This document shows positions 7,889-52,600 of a DNA stretch of 64,000 nucleotides, in pieces. The position numbers were made by a program, and so were the translations under genes. How positions within the stretch are numbered: position 1 is the stretch's first letter; every line of letters begins with the position of its first letter. This stretch comes from Macrostomum lignano. Taxonomy: Eukaryota. The stretch spans positions 1 to 64,000 of the forward strand of contig NIVC01001848.1 of the NCBI GenBank assembly GCA_002269645.1, in the 5' to 3' direction. The notes beneath the pieces were generated by a model that saw only the letters and a program-made list of their open reading frames with translations, was not told the origin of the DNA and did no database searches.

Positions 7889-8368
7889 CTACTTGTTCTC
7901 GTCAAGCGCCTTGATAACGGCTTCGAACGCTTCGACTTCAACGGTGGCCTCCGCCCTAGACAGTTCGTCAGTGGCGGCATTGGCCGCTTGCTGCGCCTTG
8001 GCCAGGCCGTCGCGGGCAGCCGCGGGGTCCAGCTGGGCCAGAGAGGCCAGCTCCTCCGCCAGGATCTGCACAGAGGAATCGTCATTAATAGTGACCGAGC
8101 CCGAGCTGACAAAGTACTTTTTAATACTGCCGTCCTCCTCGTGTACGGACACTACGCCCGGCTTTAGGCAGCCTAGCAGAGGCACGTGATTGGCCAGAAC
8201 GCCGATGCTGCCCGTGAGGGTTGGCACATCAACTTGGCGCACCTTAGCCGATCGGTAGAACACTTCACCTGGAGAGGCTAAGGTGAACGCCATGTCCGAC
8301 AGGCTGCGACGGAATCGGCCAGCAATGACCGATGAGTTCTGAAGCAGTCGGGCACTGTTGCGAAGCAT
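7889..8368 (-). CDS. ATP5F1D: Mitochondrial ATP synthase F1 delta subunit, intronless CDS (159 aa)
   Basis: ATG at 8368 with an Arg/Ser-rich transit peptide, then MAFTLASP, QVDVPTLTGSIGVLANHVP, KYFVSSGSVTINDDSSVQILAEE and a C-terminal helical hairpin. Confidence 0.95.
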   Translation of the reverse strand: MLRNSARLLQNSSVIAGRFRRSLSDMAFTLASPGEVFYRSAKVRQVDVPTLTGSIGVLANHVPLLGCLKPGVVSVHEEDGSIKKYFVSSGSVTINDDSSVQILAEELASLAQLDPAAARDGLAKAQQAANAATDELSRAEATVEVEAFEAVIKALDENK

Positions 8369-9096
8369 CTTTGCTGACGACGGAAATGAGGGCTGCAATT
8401 GAATTTAAATGCTTTACCTGGTTGCTAAGCGAAAGGTAAGCGAGATTTGCAATTGTACTACTTACTAAGTAGATCTGAAATACTTAGGCTTACTTTTCAT
8501 CTACCAAAAAGTTTTTTGTTTAAATACAACCATTTATTGCTCTCTAGACTACTGAAAGTAAATGGACGGGACATATTTCTTAATTATGATTTAATCAAAA
8601 ATTCATACCTCAGAAGTGCAATGTTTCTCAGACAACTTGAGCTTGCAAGGTTTTAAATGATTTAAATGAAGGAATTAAAAAATAATCAATATAAAATAAC
8701 CTTTTAATTCTGTTTTTTTATATATTTACTAAACGACAAATATGGGTGCGTTTTACAATGACAGATTTTTAGTAGCTGCTAAAGACGAATATTAGCTTTC
8801 AATAATATTTGTTTCATTTCTAATAGTCCAACTTCGGCGAGCTTTACCCAAGCACACGTGGGATAAATTTTAAACAATAAAATTAAACACTAAATTTCTC
8901 CCCACACACAAAACACCTAGCTAGCGTCTTTGTTTCTGAGAACAGAAAAGGTTGTTTAAATGAGTCAGAGGCGCAGAATAGCGGAGAGGAGGCTAAAAAT
9001 TGTCTGTTTAGACTATGTATAAGATTTCTATTCAGACAGAGGTCCGAGTTATCCTTAGATTTACCACGCAGACTTCAAAAGGCGCCACAAGAGAAA

Positions 9097-12000: not shown

Positions 12001-14118
12001 AATACATTACTGAAGTCAATAGGCTAAAAGAAATATAACATACCTCTTTGCACGATTCCAAGAAAAGGCCGTCACCGAGCTTCATAATATTGGCTTTGTG
12101 CACGGCGGTAACCCGTTTTCTACCATTCTTAACAGCATAGTCGAATGCAAATTTAGCAATCCGTTCGCTATTCTTTCTGGTGACAATTTTTAGTGATTCA
12201 ACCACGCCAGGCACCGTCTCGTGCTCCAGTGCGCTATACTCGCCCTCGGTCTGCTCCCGTATGATGACTAAATTGATGCTCTTGTGCCGGCTAGTGATGC
12301 CGGGCATAGAGCGGACATTCACGCAGCTGGCAAACATGTCGAGCTTGCGGCGCAGTCGCATGCTGCTGCTAGCCAGGTCTGAGCCATAGGTCGGGTGAGA
12401 CATTATACCCATTAGGGCAACCTTATTGCGTTGAATAGACTCCATTAGGGTGTCAAGCGGCTGGCTTAAACTGCGATTCACGTCGCTAACGTACACCTGC
12501 TCGTAGGCGAGCGGGGCGCCGGCTGCCTTTAGTACCTGATTAAATAGTGTGATTAATAAAATGAGTAAGGCTACACCATTACGATAAGTAGATATAATTC
12601 TGATTCGAAAAAGCAGTGATTAGTAAATGCATCAATTTCTACCGATATTTATACGACTTCTAAGAAAGAATGCAAAACTATACTTTTTGAAATATTTACA
12701 TAGATTTTATAAAATATATATAGTGTTTAACTAGGGGGGCCGTAGCCCAGCGGTAGCGCAGCTGCTCTGGTGTGCCAGCGACCCAGGCTCGATTCCAAGT
12801 GCAGCCACATTAATTTGGGGCTGAATTGGAATTTCGGCTTGGCTCGCTTGTGCAATTAACGGCCTTGAGAGCCAACCCTCCAAGGCGCAGTGAAGTGTAC
12901 ATGCCTAACGATAATATAAAGTTAGGGCCGCTGTACACTCCTGTGTGAGTGTGTGCCTGCGTAACGTATCCGCGCGCTTGTATGCCTGCTCAGGGGAGTC
13001 GGCGGAATGGGCAGCAATGCCTCTCGCCGGTTGTGTGCAAATGACGCTTAAATTGCGCCAGGGTGCACACAACCCCACTGCCTCTAATAAAAAAAAAAGT
13101 ATTTAACTCGTAAAATGGTGTTTACATTTTACATCTGTGTATTTGTTATCTTATTTTACACGCTTTATTTGTAGCTTAATAATTTGGGCTTTACCTTGCT
13201 TTGCTTTACATAAACTTCTTTATTTTTAATGCTAACTATACTAAAAAATTAAGACAGTAAAAACGGAATGAAGCTACAATTTTATTCGACGGCATCGAGT
13301 GACATAGAGAGCCACTTAGGACCAATAATAACAATAATAATTTATTACACCTGCCTCAATTGGGCCATATGTGCAACCGACAGCTCAGCCGCAGCTATTG
13401 CGCGGCGCATCTGAAGGCTGCGTACGGCTGTTCAGTCCAAGGACTGGGGGGTCGCCACACAGCCTCAATTACCCCAGCTAATGCTGGCACCCATTTTACA
13501 GCTGGGTGAACTGAAGCAATGCAGAGTTAAGTGTCTTGCTCAAGGACACAAATTGTTCCAGTGGGAACGGAATCGAACCCCGACCTTCAAGTCGTAAGTC
13601 CGACGCTCTTAGCACTAGGCTACAACCCCTAAAGGACCAAACACAATCTCTGAACTTATTTAATCAATTCAAAAGTGCAATAAAGAAAAAAAAATTTAAA
13701 ACATATTCACCCCACCCTTTACAACTTCCGAGGCTCACTAAATCTGACCCATAAACATGCACAAGTCTGCAGATTCCATGTTAACAGATTACTCAAATTT
13801 GACAATTGATAGAAGTCTTAAAATCCAAAGAATCCAGATAATTACAAAACTATTAAAACCTCAAATAAAGAAGTGGATTTATAAATTATAGAAAGTTATG
13901 GAACTTAAGGAACAAAAATTAAATGACATCCAGTTGGAAAAAAACTTGCTAATGCTAACCTGCTTTGTAGCGTCCAACAGTTCAGGGAAGACGCCATCTC
14001 CGGGCACCACTGTCACAGTTTGTTGCAATGGCGTACTGTTTGGCACTGCAGCAGCAGACTGGGAAGAGAGGCCACGATAGGCCAATGGTGCTAAGCGTCT
14101 CAACTGAGGCAATAGCAT
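9097..14118 (-). CDS. IDH3B: NAD-dependent isocitrate dehydrogenase 3 beta subunit (363 aa)
   Basis: Exons 14118-13960, 12535-12044 and 9537-9097, all phase 0. Motifs [54 protein letters not shown] and RHPFAQAVG (beta-type). Confidence 0.93.
9622..11952. repeat. 2.3-kb 22/33-bp minisatellite filling IDH3B intron 2
   Basis: Units ctcactgaaggggatagcggct (22 bp) and ctcactaaaggaccactgaaggggatagcggct (33 bp), arranged in blocks. Confidence 0.97.
12733..13098 (+). mobile_element. tRNA-derived SINE with poly(A) tail (family also at about 240-370, 23800-23980, 29830-29915)
   Basis: A-box-like TAGCCCAGCGG and B-box-like GGCTCGATTCC; aataaaaaaaaaa tail; candidate TSD agtgtttaact/agtatttaact; shared gggccgctgtacac body in the other copies. 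Confidence 0.7.
13325..13628 (-). mobile_element. CORE-type tRNA-derived SINE
   Basis: Minus-strand head GTAGCCTAGTGCTAAGAGCG...GGGTTCGATTCC, then GTGTCCTTGAGCAAGACACTTAAC...CACCCAGCTGTAAAATGGGT (MIR/CORE-like) and a TTA-rich tail. Confidence 0.75.
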
Positions 14119-22384: not shown

Positions 22385-25300
22385 ATGAAGAAAGTAAAGT
22401 CTATTGAACTATGCCGAGTTTGCAATGACATGTAAGTCTCCAGCAATCAATAGTTTTAACTTAATTGTTTAGAGTAGTTACTGCTACTGAAGATATTTTT
22501 ACATAATTAAAATCTTTTGACTCTGTAGTTCAAGTGGCATTCACTATGGCATTGAGGCCTGCGAAGGCTGCAAAGGATTCTTTAAGCGCAGTATACAGAC
22601 ACCACGTGACTACAAATGCGCGAGGGAGGGCACCTGCGAGATCAACAAGACCAGTAGAAATGTCTGTCAGTATTGTCGACTGACAAAGTGCTTGAATGCC
22701 GGCATGGACAGGGACTGTAAGCAGATATTTTTGTAATTTTAAGTCTACTCATTTAGTTTAACACTAGATTTGTCAATCAGAGGTTGCACTGATGGGAGTG
22801 TTTCAACCAACGGGTGCACTGGATGGGGTGTTTCAACCAAAGGGTGCACTGGATGGGGTGTGTTTCAACCAAAGGGTGCACTGGATGGGGTGTGTTTCAA
22901 CCAAAGGGTGCACTGGATGGGGTGTGTTTCAACCAAAGGGTGCACTGGATGGGGGGTGTTTCAACCAACGGGTGCACTGAATGGGGTGTTTCAACCAAAG
23001 GGTGCACTGGATGGGGTGTGTTTCAACCAACGGGTGCACTGGATTGGGTGTGTTTCAACCAACGGGTGCACTGGATGGGGTGTGTTTCAACCAACGGGTG
23101 CACTGGATTGGGTGTGTTTCAACCAACGGGTGCACTGGATGGGGTGTGTTTCAACCAACGGGTGCACTGGATGGGGTGTGTTTCAACCAACGGGTGCACT
23201 GAATGGGGTGTGTTTCAACCAACGGGTGCACTGAATGGGGTGTGTTTCGACCAACGGGTGCCCTGGATTGGGTGTGTTTCAACCAACGGGTGCCCTGGAT
23301 TGGGTGTGTTTCAATTGTGTGATACAGATCCGCACAGAAACCAAGCCACTCCCCCGCAATCCCTAACCCAGTGGTCCGGCCCGATCGCACCCCCGGCAAT
23401 CGCCGGAAGCGGCCAAAGACGCCTCCAACGGACGGCGCCTGCCATTTCTCTGCTCCGCCGCCTTCGCAACGTCAGCGCCAGTCAGCTATGAACATCCCGC
23501 TGCCGCCTCAGCCGTTCAACTCTTCGCTCGCAGTTCCCGCTGGCAAAATGCAACTCCCCAAACTGACACATCATAAGCCGCCAATCGGCAATCATCAGTT
23601 GCAGCACCGGCGGCAGCACCAGCTTCCTCGCCATCAGCTTGGCGGCCGCGGCAATCAGCAGCAGCAGATGCCGCCGGATTTGGACATCAGCCAGTTGCCA
23701 TCATTTTCTGTTAGCGTAGCCGGATTTCATTCGCTAATACCTTCGTCGAAAAATACGCTGCAGTCGTGCAGTGGTGTGAGTACACAATGTACCAAAGTCT
23801 TGAAGCAAATCCCGTTATGTAAATGGTTTGCAGCAGGGCTGGCCATAGGCTATCGCTGGCTCTGTGATCCCTCTGTGTTTTGCAATTCACCCCCCCCCCC
23901 CCCCCCAGACACAAAGTGTATAAGCCTGACGATTAGAAAGTCACAAGCGCCGCTGTACACCCTGCGTGAGCGTGTTTGAATACAGTAGTGTACACTGGTA
24001 CGAGTATACGGACTAAGTCAACCAGCTTGTCAGCAAACAGACCTATCTCTAAGGTCTTAAAAGTCATTGCAAGCAACTATCTAGCGACTGTGGGGCGGCT
24101 CTTTTGACTTTTTAACGACCCAAAAGCGGTCACAAGAGCGTCACGTGAGTTACAGACTCGCGAAAGAGTCGTCCAAGAATTGTTGTGTTGGCGCTTAACT
24201 TTCGCAAGAGCTGCGACTCGAATTCATCAAGCGACGCAAGTGCGCTTCAAACACGACTCAGTGACTCTACAGCATCTCTAGCACGCCTCAAATTCGACTA
24301 TACGACCCCAAAGGGTCGCGCCCAGAGTCGTTTGAGAGTCGCAGACAGTGAAACGCTTGAAGAAAGTGACTGTTTTGCGTCTCTTTGACAACTGTTTGGC
24401 GACTTGTACCGCGAAATCCCGTCGTTTTAAAGTCGTTTCAAGAGTCTCTTTCCTATTTTACCTGTGTCGTCTGCAACGACTCTGGGGGTTGACGCAAGTG
24501 ACTCTGGGACGCTTCTCTTGGCCTAGATGCCGTTTTCATCGAGTCTGATGGCTATTCTGTGGTCAGCAATGCCCGGCTAGAAAGTCTGTAGAGCTGTGAC
24601 TCTTCAGACTGGCCTATCTATCTAGGAGAACTTGGCGAGTCAATGCTTCCAGGTTCCCACAACAAGCAAAAATTCGTCCATGCAGCAGCTTCTTCATCTT
24701 TGGAAAGATGGAAAAGTCAGCTGGTGACAAATCCAGAGAGGGCGTGGGTGTCAGAGCAGCTCAAAATTTGCCTGCTTGATCGTCTCCTCCGTTTTCTTGG
24801 CCGTGTGGGACGTAGATTGTGGGTTGTCATGGCGCAGAAGGTGTGGAGCCGCGGTACCCAGCGGGCCGAGATCTTTGACAGTTCCAACTCTGCAGTCACC
24901 GTGCGGTGTGGAACAGTGAACTTTGGACTGCCGAGCATGTCAGTCTGATCAATCTCACAAACTGTCAGTCTGGCATCGGTGTCAAGCAATTCCTGAATTT
25001 GTCGATGCCATTGCTGATGCCCTTGCTGATGCCATAAGTGTCAGAAGTGTGCAGCGCAGTGGTGACTATGTGGATAAGCCTCAGGACAATGTTAATGATT
25101 AACTTTTAACTGTTCTTTCCTCAGCTTTCATGCTGCGGATGTTTTATTGATTCGTTGAATGTTTCGTTGTTTCGTACATCAGGTACAAAGCTTCGGTCTA
25201 TGGCAATTTGTAAAAGTAGCACAGGGGGTGGGGCATAAAAATGCTCATATCTCAAGAATGCCAGCAGATACAGAAATAAACAGAAAGTAATTTTAACGGG

Positions 25301-28300: not shown

Positions 28301-31300
28301 GATGATTCGCTTGGCATTCAGGTGCGTGTTTTCTATTGATCTGAGAGAATTGGGTGTTTGCTAAGGTCCTTTCCCAAAATCAACTGTCCTACTATTCCCC
28401 TATTTTTATCTGAATTCCCATTGTCCCAATCCTCAAGCCGAATTCCCATTGTCCCAATCCTCAAGCCGAATTCCCATTGTCCCAATCCTCAAGCCGAATT
28501 CCCATTGTCCCAATCCTCAAGCCGAATTCCCATTGTCCCAATCCTCAAGCCGAATTCCCATTGTCCCAATCCTCAAGCCGAATTCCCATTGTCCCAATCC
28601 TCAAGCCGAATTCCCATTGTCCCAATCCTCAAGCCGAATTCCCATTGTCCCAATCCTCAAGCTGAATTCCCATTGTCCCAATCCTCAAGCTGAATTCCCA
28701 TTGCCCCAATCCTCTAGCTGAATTCCCATTGCCCCAATCCTCTAACTGAATTCCCATCGCCCCAATCCTCTAACTGAATTCCCATTGCCCCAATCCTCTA
28801 ACTGAATTCCCATTGCCCCAATCCTCTAACTGAATTCCCATCGCCCCAATCCTCTGACTGAATTCCCATCGCCCCAATCCTCTGACTGAATTCCCATCGC
28901 CCTAATCTTCTAACTGAATTCCCATCGCCCCAATCCTCTAACTGAATTCCCATCGCCCCAATCCTCTAACTGAATTCCCATTGTCCCAATCCTCTAACTG
29001 AATTCCCATTGCCCCAATCCTCTAACTGAATTCCCATTGTCCCAATCCTCTAACTGAATTCCCATTGCCCCAATCCTCTAACTGAATTCCCATTGTCCCA
29101 ATCCTCTAACTGAATTCCCATTGCCCCAATCCTCTAACTGAATTCCCATTGTCCCAATCCTCTAACTGAATTCCCATTGTCCCAATCCTCTAACTGAATT
29201 CCCATTGTCCCAATCCTCTAGCTGAATTCCCATTGCCCCAATCCTCTAGCTGAATTCCCATTGTCCCAATCTTCTAACTGAATTTCCATTGCCCCAATGC
29301 AGAGTTTTTAATCCTGCAGTCGAAATCCTAATTGCAGCAAGATCCTAATTCAATAATATTTATGTTCATTCTCTCGTCTATTACAGGACAGTTTAAACTT
29401 AAATCCCTATTTCAAAATATTGATATTGTTTGATCCCTACTCACCCAGAGTATTATTTTGTACTGGGAGAGTTTACGGTATGAATAATACGCTAACTAGG
29501 TGAGCCCCACTGGGTTGCCGCACTCGGCAATACCCCCTCCCGCCGCCGCCCGGCCCTTGCAGAACAATGGAGCTGGCCCAGCCCAAGAAGGTAATGTTCA
29601 GCGAAGGCATGGAGTTCGATATTCACCAGACTCGCTACTATACTGGCTATCCGGACAGCTTATTCCATCTAGTGCAAGAGATTGTCCACTGCATGCAGTA
29701 TTTCAATGTGGACATTGTTGACTGCGCCCTGCTGCAGCTGCTCACGCTCTACAGTGACAGTGAGTTTTCAACTATTCTTCTATTGATTACTGTTTAAGCT
29801 AAAGGTCTTCTGAGTCATTGGCCGGGAGGATGCTGTGCAATTAACACCTATGAGGGCCAGCCCCCAAGACACAGAGTGAACATACCTTACGATAAGTCAG
29901 GGCCCGCTGTACACCCAAAAAATAGGTGGGGCTTTTATTGGGCAATCCAGTATGAATCAGCCTAAGCCATGTTACACTGGGCTCCCGCTTTGCGCTTTTG
30001 CAATTTTGTGTCAGCGTGACAACAAAGTTTGTGTGCTACTCATGTTGCAATGCCCCGGCTTGAGCTTTGAATTGGCTCTCTTGAACTCTAGTAGGAAGGA
30101 AGGAAGTTTCTCTCTCCTCTGGCTTCTCAATTGAGTAAATATTCTTTACATTTGTATATGCGAGAGCATTCTGAGAATTGCGTATTGCCCCACTTTATAA
30201 GTATTATATTCTGAATTGTTAATATGCAGTACGCTCTTTTGCGCAGTGTAGCGTTTGTTCTCTAAGAGCCAAAGCATGTTTTGGTGGGGTGGCACGCTCA
30301 AGATACAGCTTTATACTTCCAGTTCAGTAGCAAAATAATACATAAGCTGTTTTATAGGGCTCAATAAAGCCAGCTCAAATTTAGAAGCCCAAGCTTACAG
30401 GCGTAAACAGCTTGCTAATTGGTTCAGCCATAATGTACATTAGCCAGTCCACTGAAATGTACATGGCAGCTTTAGGCTTGAACAGTGGGAGAAGGCGATA
30501 AAAATTGGGCGGTGGGGTGGGGTAGAGGTTTTGTGTGAAAAGGCGCGATTGGAGCCAATAAATAAGCCTTGACTTTAAAAATACACTAATATGCTTCTGT
30601 TTAACCTACTACTGAACTGAAAGTAGCTTACAGACGCTAATGTACTGAGTGGCCTTTCTTGTACGTTGGGTAAACATTTTTTGGGAAGTGGGAAGTACCT
30701 TCTGTAGACAGTTTTAATAATTAAACTTAATGATGATAAAAGATTATGAATAAAATCACAAAAATGAGATTTAATTATTCTAAATTTTCTATTTACTTCT
30801 TTTTCTTGTCAGCAGGTGGTGACAGTTTAGGCTGCATCTTTCGTGAGATGCAAAATTTTCTTGCCATTTTTATTCTGTAGATTTGATCCTTACGATTACT
30901 GTTGCCATCATTTCCATTGAATAGCTATTTGTAGCCGTTCGCATCATTATGATTAATATGCAGTGTATTTTCTTTAAAAACCTTCTCAAAGTACTTTTCC
31001 TGCGCGTGCAGTGAGCGAAGCGATTCTATCGTTAGCAAATGGCTTTTATCCTCTCTATATTGCTCCCAGCCATTATTTATCAAAGCGATGCTACTTCCCA
31101 CCGCGTCAAGACTGCTTAATATAGAATTTCTGGAGCAGAATGCGGTTTCAGTTTGTCTATGTACTCGTATGTCCATTTATCTGATCCGTTAGTAATCCGT
31201 TCGGATGCTTTGCCTTAATCCTCTGCAAGTGAGTGAGTGAATTATTCCTGTCTATCAGAACTGAGCTTTGGGAGCGCTTATCGGAATAGAAAAGCTCCTA

Positions 31301-35280: not shown

Positions 35281-35766
35281 TACACGCAGCGTTTCCTGTC
35301 GAATTCGTTCGTGATCACAGATGGGATTAATTAGTGGCCGGGCGTGCAGGTGCAGCAGAGCCGATGTAAATCCGATGCTGCCTTTGCTTTAATCTGCTTA
35401 TTAATCTACTCTAATCCATATCAGTTCTCAAAAGCACAAAGCGAAAGCAGGAGGTGGAGGGGGTAATTACAGTAAAACCAGCTGCCTACGCGTGATAGTG
35501 TCGATAATTAATCCGTTTTTCGTAAACAATCTAAATATACTAAATCTCTAAGGTTTGTATGCTTGCTTGAATGTCCATTTAATTTCTAAATTTGCCTGTC
35601 TCTGGACGCAGTTATAATTAGTTTTACATAAAACTAAATTGTCCAATCCCTAATCGGAGTAATGGGACTTCCTAGCGAGAGTAAACTGTTCCAAACATAT
35701 GGGATGCGCTCTCTTTTTGAAGCGCGTTTAGACCTCACGGCTTCACGGTTTTACTTTAAACGGTAA

Positions 35767-36528
35767 TATAGCTCTTTGCAGCCCATTTGGGCTTACGCGC
35801 ATTTAATTCAATCCAAGATACGTTTGCCAATGTAACGAAGCTTTTGTCTATGGTAGCAAGGCTGGCACAGCGGCACTTAATTTGGTCCAACAAGCATCAA
35901 TTTGGTCCATAGCTTCATTTGCAACTGTTGCGGAGGAGCAAGATCAGCCCCAGAATTGTGAACCATGCTAGGTTGTCGAACGTATGCCACTGGCTTGTGA
36001 TCAAAGCACTCAACAGAGGTGAACACCCAAAGGACATTGCAAGGTTGCTGAATATAGAAGAAAGATGGTTTACAGCATCCATCAGCGTGTTGAAACCACT
36101 TCTGGCATAGGTCGCCTGTGAAAGGTGGCAATCGCCAAGGCAAGTTGTTAGAGACTCAGGTCCAACTGCTACTTAATGCAATTGAGACGAACCCTTTTTT
36201 GACGTTGCAGAAAATGCAGCAGCAGTTGAAGGAACAGTTCCAGTTGGTTATCAGATTTGGACCAGCAGCAGAGCTCTGGAAAAGCGACTGAAAATTGCTG
36301 GTGCAGACGCTGACATTCCAGCGGTGCACAACAACCCTTAGGCGGTTGCGAGAAGGCAAGAGTTTGCCATTGGCTCACAAGAATTTGGACCAAATTGATG
36401 TTTGTTGGACCAAATCAAATGCCACTGCGCCAGCCTTGCTACCATAGACAAAAGCTCCGTTACATTGGCAAACGTATCTTGGATTAAATTAAATGCGCGT
36501 AGGCCCAAATAAGCTGCAAAAAGCTATA
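35767..36528 (+). mobile_element. Decayed Tc1/IS630-like element with about 143-bp imperfect TIRs and an HTH remnant
   Basis: Arms 35767-35909 and 36386-36528 are inverted. The interior reads VIKALNRGEHPKDIARLLNI / RKMVYSIHQRVETT / GGNRQG across frameshifts and a stop. Confidence 0.65.
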
Positions 36529-37252
36529 TATAAATATATTGTAACATGACCTTTTTGCCCGGCGGGCACTTAATCAATCCATTTAATACCATAGACTATG
36601 TTTAGTGCCCGCAAATTGGCGGGAAGTTTAACAACACTTTCACATGTATTTGCGAAAGAGTGCATGATTTATACAGCGTGTATAACTTGGAAAGTGTCTA
36701 TGGTTACACCTCAGCGGGGGCTAGCCCCCGCACCCAGTCGCCTCGCTCTCTCATTCTTTCTCTCGCTGCCTTTGTGAGACAAAAATGTCTATGGCACAAT
36801 AACACTATAACAGTAATATATCGATCGATGCTTTAAGGGTGTGACTGGCAAATCCTATGGGGTGTAGTTGGGTATTACGAGAAGTCTCTCCTCTCCTCTA
36901 ATCTCATCTCATCTTCTATCTCCACTATCCCCTCTCCTGGCCGGCAGGCACGAGCTAGATTCTTCATCTGGCCCTTGAAGTAAAGAAGTTTGTCATTGCC
37001 CGAAATATTTGTTCATGGCAATGACCTCCGGACAATGACCGGCCATTTTCTGGAGGTAAAATAACAAGACTGGACAACAATACCATAGGCGAAAAAAGTA
37101 ACACGAAGCGTGAAATTCTTATATTTATTGAAGTCCAACAAAAAATGTTCCAACAATAACACTGCTTAGTCAATTGAGTGCAAGTCTAACCTATGGTCAT
37201 GTTCTCATCACGACAGCAGGAGAAAGTCCAGAAAATACGACGGTTGAGTCCA

Positions 37253-38709
37253 TTACTCAAATTTGCAACCATTGAATGAACAGTTGTGGAAACTGTACCT
37301 GACCGACGGATTGTCATGACTGATGCCGGTGATCTGCACGGAAGACGACACAGGTACTGGCACCGGTGAACTCTCACGCAATGGAGTCGCAACAGCTTGT
37401 GAAGAACCATTCAAATCAAGTGCCATAGAAACAGCCTCACTGGTAGACTGCAGCGAGCGATCACGGCGCTTGGACAGGTAACGGCGAGTTGTCCTCTCAG
37501 AAACCTGACCGGTTATCGACATGATGTCAGCCAGGTTGTACCCAGCAGCCTCTAGATCAGCAATCCTGCTCACTCTACAACAGAAATAAAGTATTGCATA
37601 GAAAATATGCAACTGGTTTAAAGCAATATGAAGAAAAAGGCTTACCGAATGCAATGATTCGTGTACATCTTGGACAAACCGGCCTTCTCGCTCAAGTTTC
37701 GCATGAAACGCAGGAAGTAGTTCTCCCCACGATTCTGCTTTGTTGAGAACATAGGCTGTCCATTGGAATCCGTGTTGGATAGTGGACGCGGGAACAGATG
37801 GTTGTCCTTGGTTGTTGGAGGTAGCAGTTGTAGATATCTCCTCACTTTGGCCGTGTCGTAGATCCGAGCTTGTTTGTTGTCCGGCCTGGCCTTCGCCTTC
37901 ACAGGATCGGCTGACTTATTCTTCGTTGGCAGAGCAGGAAGACAGTAGTACTCCTTGCCGTCAGAATCCGTGTGCAATTCAAGCGAGTCCCTTTGTCTCA
38001 GGAACTTCAGATGCTCCTGGCCACGCTCTCCAAAGGAGTAAAGAACATAGAACAGAAATTTAGCCTGCTCGATTTCAGCCGTAGTCCCTTCAAAGTAGCA
38101 CCGCAACTTCTGCATGTCGCCTTCTTCAATTGGTTCATACTGCCTGGTGCAGTAACCATCTCGATGGAAATCACGAACCTTGACACGCAGCATCTCGTTG
38201 CAGGAATTGAATTCCTCACCACCGATTATATCGACAGGCAGCTTCAGAACCATGCGTAGGAAACGCTGAATTCCAGCCCGGATACAGATGAGAGAGGCCG
38301 GCGAGTAGAACGAGCCATCCTGTTTCTTCAGCTTGAAGTAGAAGTACCGAAGATATTGGTTCAATGTAGGATTGTTGACATGCTGAATGTTGCGCAGATT
38401 CTCCCCTTCCAGGAAGTCTCGAAAACGTTGGCCATGCTGGTACATCTGCTTCCGAGTATCCTCAGGCAGACTCTCGATCTCGATTCTGTCCATCTCGGAA
38501 ACGTCTATCTTTTCATCTCCATCGATCATTGGCAGCCCAGTATCAGCTGGACCATTTTGGACATACTTCAGGAACGCATCGAAATCTTCGTCGTGCCGAT
38601 CAACGGCAGAGGATTCCGAGAGGAAGTTCAGTTTATCCTGCGTGATGTTGCCGAGGTCCTCACACGGGAGGTTACCCCAATTAATATAATGTATTATCGG
38701 GTCGCTCAT
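37253..38709 (-). CDS. Crypton-type (DUF3504-like) tyrosine recombinase, two exons, 461 aa
   Basis: Exon 1 38709-37646, 71-bp GT-AG intron 37645-37575, exon 2 37574-37253 (1386 nt, no stops). Core-binding segment LNQYLRYFYFKLKKQDGSFYSPASLICIRAGIQRFL; catalytic R (FGERGQE), K (TKNK), HxxR (TNHCIR), TGQ in place of TGH, and Y (TTRRY). Confidence 0.88.
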
Positions 38710-38950
38710 GATGGACAGAAAACTCTTGAATCAACAGGTTTGGACAGACTACTTACTGCCTGGGAATCCCTCACACAAACCCCTTCACCCCCACTGAAAG
38801 TTTTGCCATAGACATTTCAACCCTCCATTCAATCAATAGGATTGTCATTGCCATGAACTCTCCACGCCTTTTGGCTTTCGTGCCATAGACGTTTGTGCCT
38901 CCTCCTTCTGGGCCACTTCGATTCGTGCCATAGATATTTCCTGCAATGAA

Positions 38951-39052
38951 GTTAACTGGAAGAGAGAACTCCAGGCAACGGCCAAATTTCCACTCGCGGC
39001 TAGCGCCGCTCGTGGCTTTGGCCGTTGCCTGGAGTTCTCTCTTCCAGTTAAC
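38951..39052. other. Perfect 36-bp inverted repeat / cruciform-capable hairpin upstream of the recombinase
   Basis: gttaactggaagagagaactccaggcaacggccaaa (38951-38986) is exactly inverted at 39017-39052. The 30-nt loop has additional pairing. Confidence 0.95.
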
Positions 39053-39936: not shown

Positions 39937-41149
39937 TGCACGGCAGCCACTGCCACGGAACTGCACTCGGCACCCTAGCCAATCCAATTGATAATTGCAT
40001 TAAAAATCGGAACTAAGTTTGGAAATAAAGTTCTCTACTTAATTATCTTTTAACCAGAGAGCAGAGCCTTAAAACAGCTGACTTGGCTTGCAGCCTGCGG
40101 GAGAGTGCAGCTTGGAATTGCGAGCTGTCCGCTTGATTGGCTATGGCCGAGTGCGGTTCTGTGGCAGTGGCTTTGATTGGCTCTATTGTCTATGGCCGAG
40201 TGCGGTTCTGTGGCAGTGGCTTTGATTGGCTCTATTGTCTATGGCCTAGTGCGGTTCTGTGGCAGTGGCTTTGATTGGCTCTATTGTCTATGGCCGAGTG
40301 CGGTTCTGTGGCAGTGGCTTTGATTGGCTCTATTGTCTATGGCCGAGTGCGGTTCTGTGGCAGTGGCTTTGATTGGCTCTATTGTCTATGGCCGAGTGCG
40401 GTTCTGTGGCAGTGGCTTTGATTGGCTCTATTGTCTATGGCCGAGTGCGGTTCTGTGGCAGTGGCTTTGATTGGCTCTATTGTCTATGGCCGAGTGCGGT
40501 TCTGTGGCAGTGGCTTTGATTGGCTCTATTGTCTATGGTCGAGTGCGGTTCTGTGGCAGTGGCTTTGATTGGCTGTATTGTCTGTCTATGGTCGAGTGCA
40601 GTTCTGTGGCAGTGGCTTTGATTGGCTCTATTGTCTATGGCCGAGTGCGGTTCTGTGGCAGTGGCTTTGATTGGCTGTATTGTCTGTCTATGGTCGAGTG
40701 CGGTTCTGTGGCAGTGGCTTTGATTGGCTGTATTGTCTGTCTATGGTCGAGTGCAGTTCTGTGGCAGTGGCTTTGATTGGCTGTATTGTCTGTCTATGGT
40801 CGAGTGCAGTTCTGTGGCAGTGGCTTTGATTGGCTGTATTGTCTGTCTATGGTCGAGTGCAGTTCTGTGGCAGTGGCTTTGATTGGCTGTATTGTCTGTC
40901 TATGGTCGAGTGCAGTTCTGTGGCAGTGGCTTTGATTGGCTGTATTGTCTGTCTATGGTCGAGTGCAGTTCTGTGGCAGTGGCTTTGATTGGCTGTATTG
41001 TCTGTCTATGGTCGAGTGCAGTTCTGTGGCAGTGGCTTTGATTGGCTGTATTGTCTGTCTATGGTCGAGTGCAGTTCTGTGGCAGTGGCTTTGATTGGCT
41101 GTATTGTCTGTCTATGGTCGAGTGCAGTTGTGGCAGTGGCTGCCTTGCA
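39937..41149. mobile_element. TIR element whose right arm is expanded into a 49/53-bp minisatellite (about 40135-41140)
   Basis: The left end tgcacggcagccactgccacggaactgcactcgg is the inverse of the array unit and of the right end ggcagtggctgccttgca. Each unit contains ctatgg. Confidence 0.7.
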
Positions 41150-43686: not shown

Positions 43687-46600
43687 TCAACTGTTGGCAT
43701 TGGCAGTCCTAGCCGAAGATGCCGATGGCCTCAGCAAGAACCGGTCCTGCAGCACCACGGCGTCAATAGCCGGCGATAAATGGCTAGTAGAGCGAATCTC
43801 GGTGAACCTCTTGCCACCGGAATTGTATTTATAAAATGACGCCACCATGTCGTGTCGAATCTCGGCGGGGCCTCGGCCAGCCAGTGAGAGCAGCCGGTCG
43901 CCCTCCTGGTCGTAGCTGTACAGGCCCAGGTAGTGGCACTTGGCGTCGCGGAACAGCAGCATGAAGTGCAGCGACTGGGAGGCGGCCAGCTCGGCTATAA
44001 CAGCTGTTTTCGCCGGCGCGTTCACGGGACCGGCCAGGCAACAGTGGCTGATGGCATTGTGAATGACCGCTCGGTTTGACTTCTCCTTGGGCTGGACGAA
44101 CAGCCGCACGGATGGCTGCTGCGGCTGCTGCTGCTGCTCAGACGAGTCGGCCAGGTGAGCGGCCGAGACCGAGCGGCGAGCAGACGACGCCGACAGTTTT
44201 CTACCGCTGCTGAAAACGGCCGGACGGCGGGGCGACGGCGACGGAGGCGGCTGCTGCGGACTGGCCTGAATGAGGCTGAGCGGCCGCTGCCGGCCCGTCG
44301 GCTTCGACTCATCGTCATTCGCTGCCGGGGTCACGGTGGACGAAGTCGACGCCGTGTCGATGCGGCGACGCGGCTGCAGTTGCTGCTGCTTGTGAGTGGC
44401 GGCGGCCCGGGACTTGGCGAGCTCCTGGCAGCGCTTCTGGCGCTCCTCGGCCCGCCGACGTTCGGCGGCCTCGCGTTCGGCCACGTCCGAGCGGCGCTTT
44501 TCCTCGCGCTGGCGTGCCATCTCGGCGCGTCGCTCGGCGCCGCGTTGCTAAAAACCGACGGTCGGTAGAGGCGGTGGCGACATTTAAGTTAAATTTAAAT
44601 AAGATTTCTTTTTTTTTACAAAAAAGCTTTGCAAAAAGTCAATGGATTCATAAAACATAAATAACCAATCTGCCAGCCGCTATTTTTTCCACTGAAAAAC
44701 ATGTTCTAAGAAAACTAAGAAATTTACCTACTAACAGTAGAGCATTAGCGATTTTATAAATAAAGCAAACTTTTCCTGGAAATCCGGCCTTCAATTAAGT
44801 TAATCAATCTCGGAGTCGCACACCCTGTACTAAGTACTAACCGCTGCTAGCCCTGCTTAACTTATAGATGATAATTTTCAAATCGGCTTTGCTTACTACT
44901 AATTATTTTTTTGTACTTTGAAAGCACCCACGATTTTTCGATTAGGGCTGTCGCGTCTTAGGAAGGGGGGCGCCAGCACCAAGGGGCGCCAGCACCAAGG
45001 GGCGCCAGCACCAAGGGGCGCCAGCACCAAGGGGCGCCAGCACCAAGGGGCGCCAGCACCAAGGGGCGCCAGCACCAAGGGGCGCCAGCACCAAGGGGCG
45101 CCAGCACCAAGGGGCGCCAGCACCAAGGGGCGCCAGCACCAAGGGGCGCCAGCACCAAGGGGCGCCAGCACCAAGGGGCGCCAGCACCAAGGGGCGCCAG
45201 CACCAAGGGGCGCCAGCACCAAGGGGCGCCAGCACCAAGGGGCGCCAGCACCAAGGGGCGCCAGCACCAAGGGGCGCCAGCACCAAGGGGCGCCAGCACC
45301 AAGGGGCGCCAGCACCAAGGGGCGCCAGCACCAAGGGGCGCCAGCACCAAGGGGCGCCAGCACCAAGGGGCGCCAGCACCAAGGGGCGCCAGCACCAAGG
45401 GGCGCCAGCACGAAGGGGCGCCAGCACCAAGGGGCGCCAGCACCAAGGGGCGCCAGCACCAAGGGGCGCCAGCACCAAGGGGCGCCAGCACCAAGGGGCT
45501 CCAGCACCAAGGGGCGCCAGCACCAAGGGGCGCATGTCTGCCAGCCTATTGGGGGGCGCGGCCCTCCATGCCCCTGGCCATGCCCCTGGCCATGCCCCTG
45601 GCCATGCCCCTGGCCATGCCCCTGGTTAATGGCAGTCATATGCAGTCGAATTCTAATGGACCGGCGGCTCACCTGCAATCGCAGTTTGACCTTGTCGGCC
45701 TGGCTGGGCTCCAGCTGCGGCTCATCCATCACCACTTCAAAAGCGGTGCCAGCGGCTCCAGCCTGACCGTTGCCAGCTTCCGGTTGCTCCGCTTCCAATC
45801 CCGATTCTTCTGCATCGGCAGCATCAGCGTCTTCGTTTTCCAATTTCGATTCCGCTTCCGCTTCCTCAATTGGTTCCACTTCCGGTTCCAGGGTGGAAGA
45901 GTTGGTGCGGCGTCGAACCCGCTGACGCACTGCCGGTTGATCCAGCGGCACAAAGAAGCTGCTGCCACCGGGAGACACTGGCGATGGCTGCTGCTGCTGC
46001 TGCTGCTGCTGGTTGGCCAGGTAAAACGAATTTTCCCCAGGAGTTGCCGGGGGACCCGGATGCAAGACCTGAGCAGCGGCTGCGGCAGTTGGAGCAGCGG
46101 CTGGAGCGGCGACGTCGCCGAAGCTGAAGCGAAACTGCGGCGACGCCGCTGCGGCGCCGTCATTGGCGGTCTCTGTCGTCGGGGGCTGCGCCACCTGGGA
46201 TTCGAGTTTGGTGGGATGCGGGAGTTAAACGCAAGTTTTGGGATAATTGGGACTGCTTTGGGATAATTGGGACTGTTTTGGGATACTTGGGACTGTTTTG
46301 AGATAATTGGGACTGTCTGGGGATAATTGGGACTGTTTGGGGACAATTGGGACTGCTTGGGGATAATTGGGACTGTTGGGGATAATTGGGACTGTTTGAG
46401 GATAATTGGGACTGTTTTGGGATAATTGGGACTGTTTGAGGATAATTGGGACTGTTTGAGGATAATTGGGACTGTTTTGGGATAATTGGGACTGTTTGAG
46501 GATAATTGGGACTGTTTTGGGATAATTGGGACTGTTTGAGGATAATTGGGACTGTTTGAGGATAATTGGGACTGTTTGAGGATAATTGGGACAGTTTGGG

Positions 46601-49600: not shown

Positions 49601-52600
49601 TAGTACAGTATTTATTTGGCTTCTAAAGTTCTGGCTTGTCTAGCGCATTCGGCGCTACTATCTGCAAGTTAAGCAGTGTTGACTGCGGTTGAGTACGCAA
49701 CTAAGCTCCTGGTTCATTCCGCTGTGATAAGACGCGCTTTGTCTGTCCAAGTACAAAGCGTTGCAGCTTACCAATAAATTCTACGAGGGGCATTCAAAAA
49801 GTTTTGGCAACTGCATATGCAGATATACTTTGGCTCAAGCAAAATGCACTAAATTTTAGGAATGTCTTTAGTAACATGCCTGATACCAACGTATAAACTT
49901 TCCGCTCAATAGCTTCACCCGTTATTGCACAATTCACAGCTAACCATAACTAAGTTTCAGCTTCTGACAAATTATGGAAAATATCAGCTCAGAAAACACG
50001 CGCTTCTACATCTTCATGCGCGTACAACTTGGAGAAAACGCCACCAAAATTCATGCCGACTTAGCACAGGTGATAGGGGATCAAGCTCCATCTTATAGAA
50101 CTGTTGCGCGATGGATTGAGGCTTTTGGCGCCGGCAGGAGCAGCCTCAGTGACAACCCTCGATCTGGGAGGCCGAGCACAGCCGTGACCAAGAGCAACAT
50201 TGACGCTGTGCAATCGCTGGTGGCTGAGGACCCAAACATTTCTGTTGCCATACTGAGCCAGACACTTGGCATATCTGATAGCAGCGTTTTCACCATCCTG
50301 CATGATCAGCTGGGTCTCAGAAAAATCACAGCTCGTTGGGTGCCGCATCAGCTCACTGAGGAGCAGCGCCAGGAGCGGGTTCGCTGCAGTCAGGAGTTCT
50401 TGCGCTGCTTTGGTTCTGGCGGCACCAAGCGCCTCTCTGACATCGTCACATCGGACTTAGCTCCGTGCGACTTCTGGGCCTTCCCGAAATTGACGGAGAG
50501 GCTGGCTGGGCGCCGATTTCAGAGGCCGCAAGACCTGGCCCGCGCTATCAATTCAGAGTTGAGGGCATTCACTGAATCGGAGTACCGTGGCGCCTTTGAT
50601 TCGTGGATACGGAGGCATCAGAAGTGCATAGAGCGCGGCGGAGACTACATAGAAGGACTGTAAACCCTTACTTTTAGAATAATAAGCTTCCACTAGATTT
50701 TAGTCGCCTGTTGCCAAAACTTTTTGAATGCCCCTCGTAGCACCCGGCTCAATATGCTATAAATCAAAGGTAAAATTTTACGAAGAAATTAACCCCCATA
50801 ACCATGCGGAGAGGGAAGGGTACAGGGTATTAATCCCCTGTGCGCAATCTTATTGAAGCTCAAGAGGAAACGAAGGCAGGGCTGAAACCGGAGGAGTGCA
50901 AAAGCCCGAGAGAACCAGCTGCTGTCTTGTCTCATGTTGAGGAGCTACTAGCTTAATAATATACACTATACATAGGAGTTTATATGCATATACTTAATTG
51001 GAATAGTACAGACGCGAAATTGAAATATACGAATATTTCGTTAGTTGTACGATATATATATATATATATATATTATTTGGGCGAAGGGTGTGAGAGATAA
51101 CAGTGTAACAAAATAATTGCATTGACTTTGATAACTATGTTTGTTAATAACTGTATGTAATTTTGTAAGTCAACCAAATATTCGCTAAACACTGCCATAT
51201 TTGTTCAAAGCTGGCTTGATAGATAATTACATGTACATGACACAGAAACCGCCCACACTTTGCTTGCGCACTCGCACACTCACACTTGCTGCACCCAAAA
51301 TGGATCATAAAAAAGTATTAGATAGACTTGATTTCCTTTGACAGTCTCTGCACACGAACAATTCCCCTTTGACAGTCTCTACACACGAACAATTCCCCTT
51401 TGACAGTCTCTACACACGAACAATTCCCCTTTGACAGTCTCTGCACACGAACAATTCCCCTTTGACAGTGTCTGCACACCCAACGATTCCCCTTTGACAG
51501 TCTCTACACACGAACAATTCCCCTTTGACAGTCTCTGAACACCCAACGATTCCCCTTTGACAGTCTCTGCACACACAAACAATTCCCCTTTGACAGTCTT
51601 TGCACACGAACAATTCCCCTTTGACAGTCTCTGCACACGAACAATTCCCCTTTGACAGTGTCTGCACACCCAACGATTCCCCTTTGACAGTCTCTACACA
51701 CGAACAATTCCCCTTTGACAGTCTCTGAACACCCAACGATTCCCCTTTGACAGTCTCTGCACACACAAACAATTCCCCTTTGACAGTCTCTGCACACGAA
51801 CAATTCCCCTTTGACAGTCTCGGCAAACAAACAATTCCCCTTTGACAGTCTCTACATACCCAAGAATTCCCCTTTGACAGTCTCTGCACACCCAACAATT
51901 CCCCTTTGACAGTCTCTGCACACACGAACAATTCCCCTTTGACAGAATCTGCACACGAACAGTTCCCCTTTGACAGTCTCTGCACACAAACAATTCCCCT
52001 TTGACAGTCTCTGCACACGAACAGTTCCCCTTTGACAGTCTTTGCACACGAACAATTCCCCCTTGACAGTCTCTACACACCCAAGAATTCCCTTTTGACA
52101 GTGTCTGCACACCCAACGATTCCCCTTTGACAGTCTCTACACACGAACAATTCCCCTTTGACAGTCTTTGCACACGAACAATTCCCCTTTGACAGTCTCG
52201 GCAAACGAACAATTCCCCTTTGACAGTCTCGGCAAACGAAAAATTCCCCTTTACAACAGTAATTCTGCTCAGCCCGGGCATCTGAGTAACAGTCAATCAT
52301 TACCTCATGCTCAGCGTCCCATTCGTGCGTCAGATCATCAGGCTCCACCGGTCGCCGCCGACAGTCGCCCTTCTCGTTGGCGTTGCTTTCGTCAACGTCG
52401 ACATGAAGCAGTTCGGCGAATCCGCGCACCCGAAGGCAGGCGAGGACGCCGGCGTGATCGGCACAAGCGACGCCCGGCAGCAGGCGGCGACAGGCGGCCA
52501 CGTACAGCCGGCCGCTGGTCAGGCCGGCGGCCACGGCAGCCGACGGGCCCTGGGCGGCCGAGTCCCACGCTGAAGTGTCGGCTGATGAGGCGAACTCTGG

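Follow-up and report, generated by a model that had tools for sequence, protein, structure and literature searches.

Of the classes of eukaryotic DNA transposons, Cryptons are understood least. To our knowledge, the only Crypton seen to be active is a CryptonF element of Chlamydomonas, and we know of no animal Crypton with defined ends or a tested recombinase. The Chlamydomonas element, CryptonF-1_cRei, inserts and excises, and its terminal core matches the target (PMC9977147). According to the model of Goodwin and Kojima, a Crypton is excised as a circle that re-integrates (PMC3212892). The animal elements closest to the locus described here are those of CryptonA, the DUF3504-type group, and the 2011 survey of Kojima and Jurka reported no terminal repeats in animal Cryptons (PMC3212892). 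Inverted motifs and palindromes in the flanks lie outside this classical description of Crypton termini.

We analyzed a 64-kb stretch of Macrostomum lignano DNA (here referred to as the window) that contains an intron-bearing tyrosine recombinase (YR) gene. A segment of about 2.5 kb around this gene, roughly 36556-39052 on the minus strand, is probably one copy of a Crypton-type DNA transposon that is autonomous and belongs to the animal CryptonA/DUF3504 lineage. The family itself is known, and the only unusual features of the copy are the long palindromes and the repeated short motifs at its ends. The gene consists of the following parts.

37646..38709, minus strand: exon 1 (aa 1-355), which encodes the N-terminal region, then the core-binding domain and the catalytic domain as far as the R355 codon.
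37575..37645, minus strand: intron of 71 nt in phase 2, GTAAGC...TTTCTGTTGTAG (that is, GTAAGC...TTGTAG), with GT..AG borders.
37253..37574, minus strand: exon 2 (aa 355-461 and the TGA stop).
37124..37129, minus strand: AATAAA polyadenylation-type signal read from the sequence, about 125 nt past the stop codon.

Conceptual splicing gives a predicted coding sequence of 1386 nt and 461 aa without internal stops. Exon 1 encodes a QRICH1-like, SAM-like core-binding domain together with R229, K263 and H352, and ends within the R355 codon, the Arg codon of the HCIR box, which the intron splits between CG and A. Exon 2 encodes Q378 and the nucleophile Y387, and in addition a low-complexity linker and, at the C terminus, the conserved motif FHNCSFNGCKFE. 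The mechanical ORF list cuts the gene into ORFs of 355 aa and 133 aa. A preliminary description of this DNA had proposed an uninterrupted two-exon ORF of 461 aa, split in the ORF track by a 71-bp intron in the HCIR Arg codon, and on both points our gene model agrees. With the intron retained, the frame would meet an immediate stop (CGG TAA) and the product would be without Q378 and Y387. Judged from the reading frame, removal of the 71-nt intron is required to join the HxxR box to the segment of the nucleophilic Tyr.

The intron is found at the identical codon and phase in three related loci, L001 (where it has 98 nt), L013 and L014, whose proteins are 39-70% identical to the window protein and group with it in one clade of the tree; it is absent in L002 and L003. 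These alignments show its predicted position to be ancestral to a clade of such elements. The closest relative, L001, also has an AATAAA in the equivalent region. Comparison of the window with L001 gave a pS of 0.80 (saturated) and a pN of 0.19, and for exon 2 alone 0.73 and 0.25, respectively. Purifying selection thus acts on the predicted coding sequence, with pN/pS far below 1 in each of the two exons. We regard the gene as more than a chance reading frame because of these ratios, because homologues have the reading frame, the intron position and a C-terminal F-x-N-C-x-F in common, and because the predicted fold is Cre-like.

Alignment with relatives identifies the catalytic set as R229, K263, H352, R355, Q378 and Y387. 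The residues R, K, R and Y are invariant across 42 sequences, and H352 is a His in 41 of 42 relatives. At the His/Trp position the window protein has Gln378, and the alignment gives Gln throughout the near clade; we know of no assay of a tyrosine recombinase that has Gln there. The AlphaFold2 model (pLDDT 86.3, pTM 0.72) has Cre-loxP complexes, with Cre in full length, as its top Foldseek matches in the PDB (E=6e-9; TM 0.64-0.70, normalised by target; 340-360 columns), and it has the two domains, helical core-binding and catalytic, of the tyrosine recombinase superfamily. Alignment and predicted model together show a Cre-like tyrosine recombinase of two domains that has every residue of R-K-H-R-Y and Gln for the second His/Trp, which bears out the core-binding domain and the R-K-HxxR-(Q)-Y residues listed in the preliminary description.

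The family assignment takes a longer route. Against PF00589 (Phage_integrase), the window protein reaches 19.2 bits (E=1.1e-3), short of the gathering score of 27.1, and the Pfam search gave no direct match to PF12012 (DUF3504) even at E<=1. The same search gave a weak QRICH1-domain match in the core-binding region (E=3e-3) and detected no zinc-finger, BTB or other fused domain, as had been claimed before. Among the 42 aligned relatives, 33 match DUF3504 and 36 match Phage_integrase, and proteins with a PF12012 domain are homologues of the window protein at E=1e-42 to 1e-45. The family profile matches XerA at E=4e-7 (4.3e-7), and the 13 word-index homologues include a Macrostomum lignano 'Tyr recombinase domain-containing protein' and DUF3504+Phage_integrase proteins. 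The DUF3504 membership of the window protein is only transitive, because its own scores are under the Pfam thresholds and it has no DUF3504 match of its own. We read it as a probable, divergent member of the CryptonA/DUF3504 family of tyrosine recombinases, in which 15,843 cluster representatives match at E<=1e-3. The earlier naming of a Crypton-type YR element therefore stands by way of the family profile, the relatives, the Cre-like model and the lack of a reverse transcriptase or fused host domain, while the profile search suggested for Phage_integrase and DUF3504 succeeds for most relatives and falls short for the window protein itself.

Upstream of the gene, we found one long palindrome and a series of short motifs.

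38951..39052, minus strand: 5' palindrome of 36/30/36 nt with arms 100% complementary, 241 nt upstream of the ATG.
38925..38939, plus strand: upstream motif copy 1, GTGCCATAGATATTT (gene strand ATCTATGGCAC).
38880..38894, plus strand: upstream motif copy 2, GTGCCATAGACGTTT.
38844..38858, no strand assigned: GTCATTGCCATGAAC (plus-strand reading), the upstream member of a perfect inverted pair of 15 nt whose partner is at 37011-37025.
38803..38817, plus strand: upstream motif copy 3, TTGCCATAGACATTT, in which the gene-strand core TCTATGG starts 103 nt before the ATG.

The palindrome is the probable 5' extremity of the element. Its 30-nt centre is partly self-pairing, with the apex GCGGC-GCTA-GCCGC, and its DNA fold reaches -55.5 kcal/mol (z = -16). 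Palindromes of 85-123 nt with a G+C-rich apex also stand upstream of the YR gene in the distant relatives L006, L007, L008 and L015, with fold z from -10 to -13.5 there and from -10 to -22 over the palindromes of these four loci and the window together. The beginning of contig L001 can be aligned with the arm that lies nearer the gene. A long palindrome was not seen in the sequence available for L013 and L014. As Rfam gave no match in 35.5-41.5 kb, the palindrome is not a known structured RNA. GCCATAGAC occurs 12 times in the window versus 0.38 expected.

Four loci (the window, L001, L003 and L007) have a sense-oriented TCTATGG at a distance of 91-103 nt before the ATG (P = 3e-6 for this placement, computed from the relatives alone). 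The motif is missing in 6 of 12 related loci in one count, and in L002, L005, L006, L008 and L012-L014 as listed. Such a fixed upstream motif, at about 100 nt, could alternatively be a promoter element instead of a recombination core. The ATG-proximal GTCTATGGCA (38805-38814) was considered as the 5' end of the element and set aside, since the arm of the inverted pair and the blocks conserved in L001 lie further upstream.

The downstream flank mirrors part of this arrangement.

37011..37058, minus strand: conserved downstream block, including the second arm (37011-37025) of the perfect 15-nt inverted pair.
36783..36797, minus strand: downstream motif copy in mirror orientation, AAATGTCTATGGCAC on the plus strand (inverted matches).
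36714..36731, no strand assigned: perfect 18-bp palindrome, GCGGGGGCTAGCCCCCGC (opposite-strand self-match; fold z = -2.6).
36693..36707, minus strand: second downstream motif copy in mirror orientation, gtgTCTATGGttac.
36556..36625, minus strand: weak 3' hairpin, GCGGGCACT (36562-36570), 33 nt, AGTGCCCGC (36604-36612), z = -2.1.

Copies of the GTGCCATAGAC-type motif thus stand in opposite orientation on the two sides of the gene. Flank blocks are conserved with L001 despite saturated dS; one of them, 37011..37058, lies beyond the poly(A) signal and aligns with L001 1915-1960 at about 75%. L001 carries its own matching inverted pair, TTCATGTTAATG, at 101-116 and 1948-1963, which differs from that of the window; therefore the two arms co-vary within each element. 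The region 36556..36625 is the probable 3' extremity. Its hairpin encloses TACCATAGACTATG (36587-36600) and carries TGCCCGCAAATT (36606-36617), and the terminal CATAGTCTATGGTA recurs without change at the 3' end of L003, a relative with 43% protein identity; L003 also has GTCTATGGTA at both of its ends. Elsewhere, AATTTGCGGGCA recurs inside the palindromes of L006 and L007, and L015 has TGCCCGCAAA-type repeats. A candidate core, GTCTATGG(C/T)A, is present in direct orientation at 38805-38814 and 36587-36596, as read from one copy with approximate ends.

By analogy with the Crypton model, which the CryptonF activity seen in Chlamydomonas supports, the recombinase would bind the flanking repeats and pair the two ends, the element would be excised as a circle, and the circle would re-integrate through conservative site-specific recombination. 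The short core used for this would most likely be (G)TCTATGG. We tentatively suggest, as a possibility that we would not yet favor, that the clade has complex structured ends undescribed for Cryptons, with palindromes of about 100 nt and G+C-rich apex at or near each extremity, mirror arrays of an 11-15-nt putative recombinase-binding motif, and a 7-10-bp core (G)TCTATGG(TA). If so, recombination at palindromes or cores would explain the tandem arrays separated by palindromes in L006 and L007. As a corollary, intron retention would give a protein that binds DNA but has no catalytic Tyr, and such a protein could act as a repressor of transposition; retention of intron 3 in the P element is an analogue.

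Three other explanations of the locus were weighed. In the first, which we consider unlikely, the gene is a domesticated host recombinase, an ex-Crypton YR kept for a cellular function, whose intron and Gln are signs of exaptation and whose flank motifs are promoter or regulatory sequences. DUF3504 recombinases have indeed been domesticated repeatedly (PMC3212892, PMC13465315), and the strong purifying selection, the intron position kept over the whole range of protein identity and the Gln in place of His-II across the clade are in line with such a history; however, R, K, H, R and Y are all kept here, whereas domesticated DUF3504 genes typically lose them (PMC3212892), and no host domain is fused. 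The distance of the TCTATGG motif from the ATG is as fixed as that of a promoter element would be. Against domestication, one conserved block and the inverted-pair partner lie 3' of the poly(A) signal, and in L006 and L007 genes in tandem have palindromes on both sides. Copy number was searched with 157 family proteins (tblastn), and no second or decayed YR copy was found in the 64-kb window, as expected of a host gene; the other matches were two short ones at about 55.7-55.9 kb to a non-YR part of the long chimeric protein P0071. The exon-1 ORF had no exact match in the assembly collection, and the metagenome scan with the narrow alignment A2 gave 4 distant loci only. On the other side, M. 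lignano has several near-identical gene models of the family (at least 8 UniProt entries in two 90% clusters), and three diverged paralogues come from one JGI metagenome sample. The locus is intergenic and repeat-rich, adjoining a Tc1-like TIR element and satellites. The evidence leans to a mobile element because the palindrome and motif architecture of the flanks is conserved in relatives, because the elements of L006 and L007 are in tandem with palindromes between them, and because of these several M. lignano copies and metagenome paralogues.

The second explanation, to which we likewise give a small chance, is that of a stranded copy, in which the recombinase gene is intact, one end has decayed, and the immobile copy persists as a recombinase source or fossil. 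The 3' end may be decayed because its hairpin is weak: it is short and has a 33-nt centre, against an apex of 3-4 nt in relatives and a perfect palindrome at the 5' end, and the Tc1-like element lies only about 30-60 bp away. However, the terminal CATAGTCTATGGTA is intact and the same as in L003, neither the mirrored motif copies nor the 15-nt pair is damaged, and the ORF is without lesion.

The third, that 38951-39052 is an unrelated TTAA-bounded foldback or MITE insertion and the YR gene a remnant of a larger, decayed DIRS/Ngaro-like retroelement, is very improbable: the palindrome does start and finish with GTTAAC in a region full of other repeats, but its proximal arm and the adjoining TTCATTG...TCTATGGC block are conserved in L001, similar palindromes precede the YR gene in L006, L007, L008 and L015, the ORFs of at least 130 aa in 32.2-42.0 kb are only the two YR exons and two antisense or overlapping ones, and DIRS/Ngaro YRs do not match DUF3504 (PMC3212892). 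A DIRS, Ngaro or VIPER identity was rejected, as the ORF list for 32.2-42.0 kb and tblastn gave no reverse transcriptase or RNase H ORF near the YR and the relatives match DUF3504, unlike DIRS/Ngaro YRs.

As a genome feature, the probable Crypton copy is unremarkable, one among the about 16,000 cluster representatives of a very large, known family. An apparently intact animal copy whose gene is compact and for which cis-sites can be proposed supplies concrete substrates on which a CryptonA recombinase could first be tested biochemically; these sites (palindrome, TCTATGG core and mirrored motifs) are common to relatives with proteins only 28-45% identical. Such a test would bear on the origin of the ZMYM, QRICH1 and KCTD1 DUF3504 domains, and the enzyme, if it works, would be a eukaryote-derived site-specific recombinase.

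Compared with known systems, the locus is most similar to CryptonA. Both are single-gene DNA elements of animal hosts that encode only a YR with an N-terminal core-binding domain, without RT or a C-terminal DNA-binding domain, and the relatives of the window protein match DUF3504 and Phage_integrase. For the host, the best named matches of a mitochondrial ATP synthase delta subunit are about 60% identical and come from molluscs, annelids and flatworms, which indicates a spiralian. Unlike CryptonA, the window protein is too divergent for its own DUF3504 match and has Gln for His-II, and the element and its relatives have the palindrome of about 100 nt, the mirrored motif arrays and the short inverted pair. 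We found no description of palindromic CryptonA termini or of flatworm Cryptons in the literature searched, subscription journals and Repbase entries being outside the search. Glomhoppers, a fungal CryptonA subfamily (PMC13465315), also have DUF3504-type recombinases with intact catalytic residues, introns in many copies and a repeat-rich compartment, and mobility versus domestication is debated there as it is here. Their intron positions are inconsistent across copies (PMC13465315), whereas the window clade has one conserved position, and the host kingdom is different.

CryptonS and CryptonF of stramenopiles, fungi and Chlamydomonas (PMC3212892, PMC9977147) resemble the window element in the proposed mechanism, in which a short core at the terminus recombines with a target of almost the same sequence, and the termini of CryptonS are mostly TATGG, which is contained in the proposed TCTATGG core. 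They belong to other protein groups, CryptonF with a GCR1_C domain and CryptonS with a conserved C-terminal region, and are described with terminal direct repeats of 4-6 bp only and no long palindromes. The domesticated DUF3504 genes (ZMYM2/3/4, QRICH1, KCTD1 and KIAA1958) share the homologous catalytic-domain fold, and the weak QRICH1-domain match lies in the core-binding region. Those genes lost catalytic residues and were fused to MYM zinc fingers, BTB or Q-rich regions; the window protein, in contrast, shows neither the catalytic loss nor the host-domain fusion, keeping its catalytic set with nothing fused. From Cre/loxP and the Xer-type systems it differs in an identity of only 13-17%, in about 100 additional aa at the N terminus and a C-terminal tail bearing F-x-N-C-x-F, in being encoded by a eukaryotic gene with a predicted spliceosomal intron, and in the Gln at the position of Cre Trp315 or the Xer/Int His. 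What it has in common with them is the two-domain fold (Foldseek E=6e-9 to Cre; XerA profile match) and the R-K-H-R-Y residues of the predicted chemistry.

The preliminary description had placed an intact, intron-containing Crypton-type element at 36589-39052, and this location proved correct, with the gene on the minus strand. As it had also stated, the gene is split in two by the ORF track: the ORF list holds a 355-aa ORF (38709..37642, minus strand), closing in ...TNHCIR before its stop, and a separate 133-aa ORF holding ...RVSRIADLEAAGY...ITGQVSERTTRRYL... We assembled the CDS by joining 38709..37646 to 37574..37253 (minus strand), leaving out a 71-nt intron that runs GTAAGC...polypyrimidine...TTGTAG. 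The spliced CDS of 1386 nt encodes 461 aa with no internal stop, so the two-exon ORF described beforehand could be reconstructed, with its splice point after base 2 of the Arg codon in HCIR. If the intron is retained, the frame reads CGG TAA and the product stops at ...HCIR, without the Tyr nucleophile. It is conceivable, but speculative, that retention would yield a DNA-binding protein lacking the nucleophile and hence P-element-like regulation; the immediate stop is automatic with a phase-2 GTRAG donor and so is not evidence for a regulatory role.

L001, a 1963-bp contig encoding the closest relative, carries an intron at the identical site and phase (CATTCG/GTGAGT...TTCTAG/T), which measures 98 nt and shows no sequence relationship to that of the window. 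The same intron (AG/GTAAGT) is found in the related loci L013 and L014, whose proteins share 43% and 39% identity with that of the window, and it is absent in both L002 and L003 (45% and 43% identical). In a neighbour-joining tree the window protein, these five relatives and the M. lignano proteins form one clade; since intron-bearing and intronless sequences stand together there, the HCIR intron was already present in the ancestor of the clade, with a single later loss. Between window and L001, the synonymous difference (pS) is 0.80 (saturated) and the nonsynonymous difference (pN) 0.19, with values of 0.73 and 0.25 for exon 2 alone. Purifying selection acts on both exons, and the predicted two-exon gene structure has the support of evolution.

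In Pfam, the window protein matched Phage_integrase (E=1.1e-3, 19.2 bits vs a cut-off of 27.1) and the QRICH1 domain (E=3e-3, aa 107-173) below threshold, and no DUF3504 match was found. The expected Phage_integrase and DUF3504 profile hits were thus obtained for the aligned relatives (36/42 and 33/42, with the QRICH1 domain in 19/42) but not for the window protein itself. The claim of a Crypton-type tyrosine recombinase (YR) is nevertheless supported by homologues carrying both DUF3504 and Phage_integrase, which match at E=1e-42 to 1e-45, by a match of the family profile to archaeal XerA that spans the HxxR, GH and Y boxes (E=4e-7), and by a Cre-like model. This AlphaFold2 model (built with the alignment; mean pLDDT 86, pTM 0.72) has Cre-loxP complexes as its best PDB matches (E=6e-9, TM 0.64-0.70), over about 350 columns, so that both domains match. 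The homology search, whose outcome was unambiguous, also returned a related protein, P0001, with 70% identity and M. lignano "Tyr recombinase domain-containing" proteins with about 50%. An exhaustive profile search matched 15,843 cluster representatives with a cut-off of E<=1e-3 and 1,344 with one of E<=1e-30.

The catalytic columns are R229, K263, H352, R355, Q378 and Y387, with R, K, R and Y unchanged in 42/42 sequences. Gln occupies the His/Trp position both in the window protein and throughout its near clade, and two further relatives have it independently. This residue is unusual, but selection has conserved it in a clade with multiple copies, which suggests that it is functional; in type IB topoisomerases, Gln can partly stand in for the equivalent His, which offers a lead. 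A C-terminal motif, F-x-N-C-x-F (FHNCSFNGCKFE before the stop in the window protein), is kept family-wide, confirming that the reading of exon 2 runs through to the natural stop. The motif (window 37253-37300, aa 446-461) forms the extreme end of nearly all family members, is often duplicated (e.g. FSNCSFSNCSFSF), and comes after a variable low-complexity linker, with two short beta-strands predicted. In L002 (1410-1580; encoding P0003) the called ORF ends inside a different intron near the C-terminus and the motif is encoded by the next exon; as this locus has no HCIR intron, intron positions vary among family members.

Within the element, no other ORF of any size and no reverse transcriptase (RT)-like sequence was seen in the ORF list or by tblastn, and the absence of RT rules out a DIRS/Ngaro element. 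The non-coding flanks of the gene are highly structured, as follows.

38951-39052: perfect palindrome, 36-nt arms, 30-nt centre also pairing
38925, 38880, 38803, plus strand: three copies of the motif GTGCCATAGA(C/T)nTTT, between palindrome and ATG
38844-38858 and 37011-37025: perfect 15-nt inverted pair, either side of the gene
36783, 36693, opposite orientation: two copies of the same GTGCCATAGA motif, downstream of the gene
36714-36731: perfect 18-bp palindrome
36587-36600: terminal TACCATAGACTATG
36562-36612: weak hairpin surrounding the terminal motif and carrying TGCCCGCAAATT

Folded as DNA, the palindrome at 38951-39052 reaches -55.5 kcal/mol (z = -16). The 9-mer GCCATAGAC occurs 12 times in the window vs 0.38 expected, and the 7-mer is at about the chance rate outside the element, the adjacent satellite and the terminal inverted repeats (TIRs) of the neighbouring Tc1-like element.

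Despite saturated synonymous sites, alignable flank blocks persist between window and L001. Upstream these are the proximal palindrome arm, TTCATTG and TCTATGGC; downstream it is 46 nt at 37011-37058, which lie past the AATAAA signal, making a role in mRNA unlikely. The short inverted pair exists in L001 in a variant form (TTCATGTTAATG, 101-116 and 1948-1963), so the arms co-vary within each element. Both ends of the L001 contig lie inside inverted repeats, presumably owing to the tendency of short-read assembly to break off at palindromes. In the window, L001, L003 and L007, sense TCTATGG starts 103, 100, 102 and 91 nt upstream of the ATG, respectively; the relatives' upstream flanks contain 5 copies vs 0.2 expected (P=3e-6), and L015 has a further one about 66 nt upstream. 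Lying about 100 nt upstream of the ATG, the motif may belong to a promoter. In L003, GTCTATGGTA is present close to either end, and the 3' copy, CCATAGTCTATGGTA, equals the window 3' terminus in 14/14 bases, although the proteins are only 43% identical.

In L006, L007, L008 and L015, whose proteins have 28-38% identity, the YR gene is preceded by a palindrome of 85-123 nt that has a G+C-rich apex and a centre of 3-4 nt (z = -12, -13.5, -10.8 and -10.4, respectively). A further palindrome stands downstream of the gene in L006 and L007 (L007 z = -21.6), and the 12-mer AATTTGCGGGCA of the window 3' hairpin reappears in the palindromes of both. L015 has a TGCCCG(C/G)AAA repeat, four copies upstream and one downstream of the gene. 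In L006, 1-4050 holds two diverged YR genes in tandem, with a palindrome of about 100 nt before, between and after them and 116-nt direct repeats (57-172 and 2149-2264, 92% identical); the 3' end of L007 (1900-2074) runs into the start of an L006-type palindrome. This arrangement suggests that one element integrated beside another's palindrome.

The feature is most economically read as one copy of an autonomous Crypton-type DNA transposon, about 2.5 kb long and with a single gene. That gene would supply a Cre-like recombinase, and the ends would carry palindromes and putative binding-site arrays. The recombinase may bind the repeated motifs, synapse both ends and excise a circle, which would re-integrate by conservative recombination at a short core. 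The other possibility raised beforehand, a domesticated recombinase gene retained by the host, we consider improbable: M. lignano has at least 8 gene models in two 90%-identity clusters, one metagenome sample contains three paralogues that share 39-61% identity with the window protein, tandem arrays of elements occur among the relatives, and the locus is repeat-rich and intergenic, beside a Tc1-like element and several satellites. Such population-type evidence favours mobility over a host gene; moreover, with its catalytic residues retained and no fused domain, the YR gene is not a domesticated one of the ZMYM/QRICH1/KCTD1 type. The 64-kb window contains one copy only. It is doubtful that this is a stranded copy whose 3' end has decayed.

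Repeats of other kinds surround the Crypton copy. A non-autonomous Tc1/mariner-like element (35766-36529; 144-nt TIRs, 92% complementary, 476 nt between) has a weak interior HTH_32 match (E=0.006) and ends about 30-60 bp from the Crypton 3' end; both TIRs contain TACCATAGAC (35845-35854, 36440-36449), a 10-mer of the Crypton terminus. The satellite at 40141-41141 (and 39945-39971) has about 20 copies of a 49/53-bp unit, each with the Crypton core motif as (T)GTCTATGG(C/T)C; its TTGTCTATGGCCGA recurs unchanged as a 14-mer upstream of the L001 gene, and the array is preceded, at a distance of 174 nt, by a partial unit in inverted orientation. The satellite may be a derivative of a Crypton end, or a target array. 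Minisatellite density is exceptional throughout the window (52 TRF rows at score >=100; e.g. 9616-11953, 22785-23314, 28410-29298, 44967-45533, 61961-63998), with a 2.3-kb array of 22/33-bp units between the isocitrate dehydrogenase exons 9097-9636 and 11990-12496, and others inside long ORFs of the CAMSAP-like gene region. The neighbouring genes and remnants are as follows.

7889-8398, minus strand: mitochondrial ATP synthase delta subunit; best named matches about 60% (molluscs, annelids, flatworms), placing the host among the spiralian animals
9097-12496, minus strand: NAD-isocitrate dehydrogenase (Iso_dh)
43687-44520, minus strand: CAMSAP CKK-domain exon (E=1e-42)
49974-50663, plus strand: mariner-type transposase N-terminal remnant (HTH_48, HTH_Tnp_Tc3_2)

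Among known systems, Cre/Xer-type recombinases are predicted to be alike to the window protein in fold and chemistry, and homology groups it with CryptonA/DUF3504 elements, DUF3504 being the recombinase domain of animal CryptonA and derived host genes (Kojima & Jurka, PMC3212892). CryptonS termini are mostly TATGG (PMC3212892), which is contained in TCTATGG of this element; Chlamydomonas CryptonF-1 ends in CACCG and has the target CAYCG, with insertion and excision seen (PMC9977147); and fungi are known to have CryptonA copies that contain introns while their catalytic residues are intact (PMC13465315). The proposed excision and re-integration of a circle would fit all three. In the searchable literature we found no description of a palindrome-plus-mirrored-motif end architecture for Cryptons, and if comparisons of copies bear it out, the clade would be a structural variant of Cryptons. 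The very large Crypton/DUF3504 family and introns in CryptonA are already known; the present copy is of value as an animal Crypton that is both intact and compact, and whose explicit candidate sites for recombination are open to direct testing.
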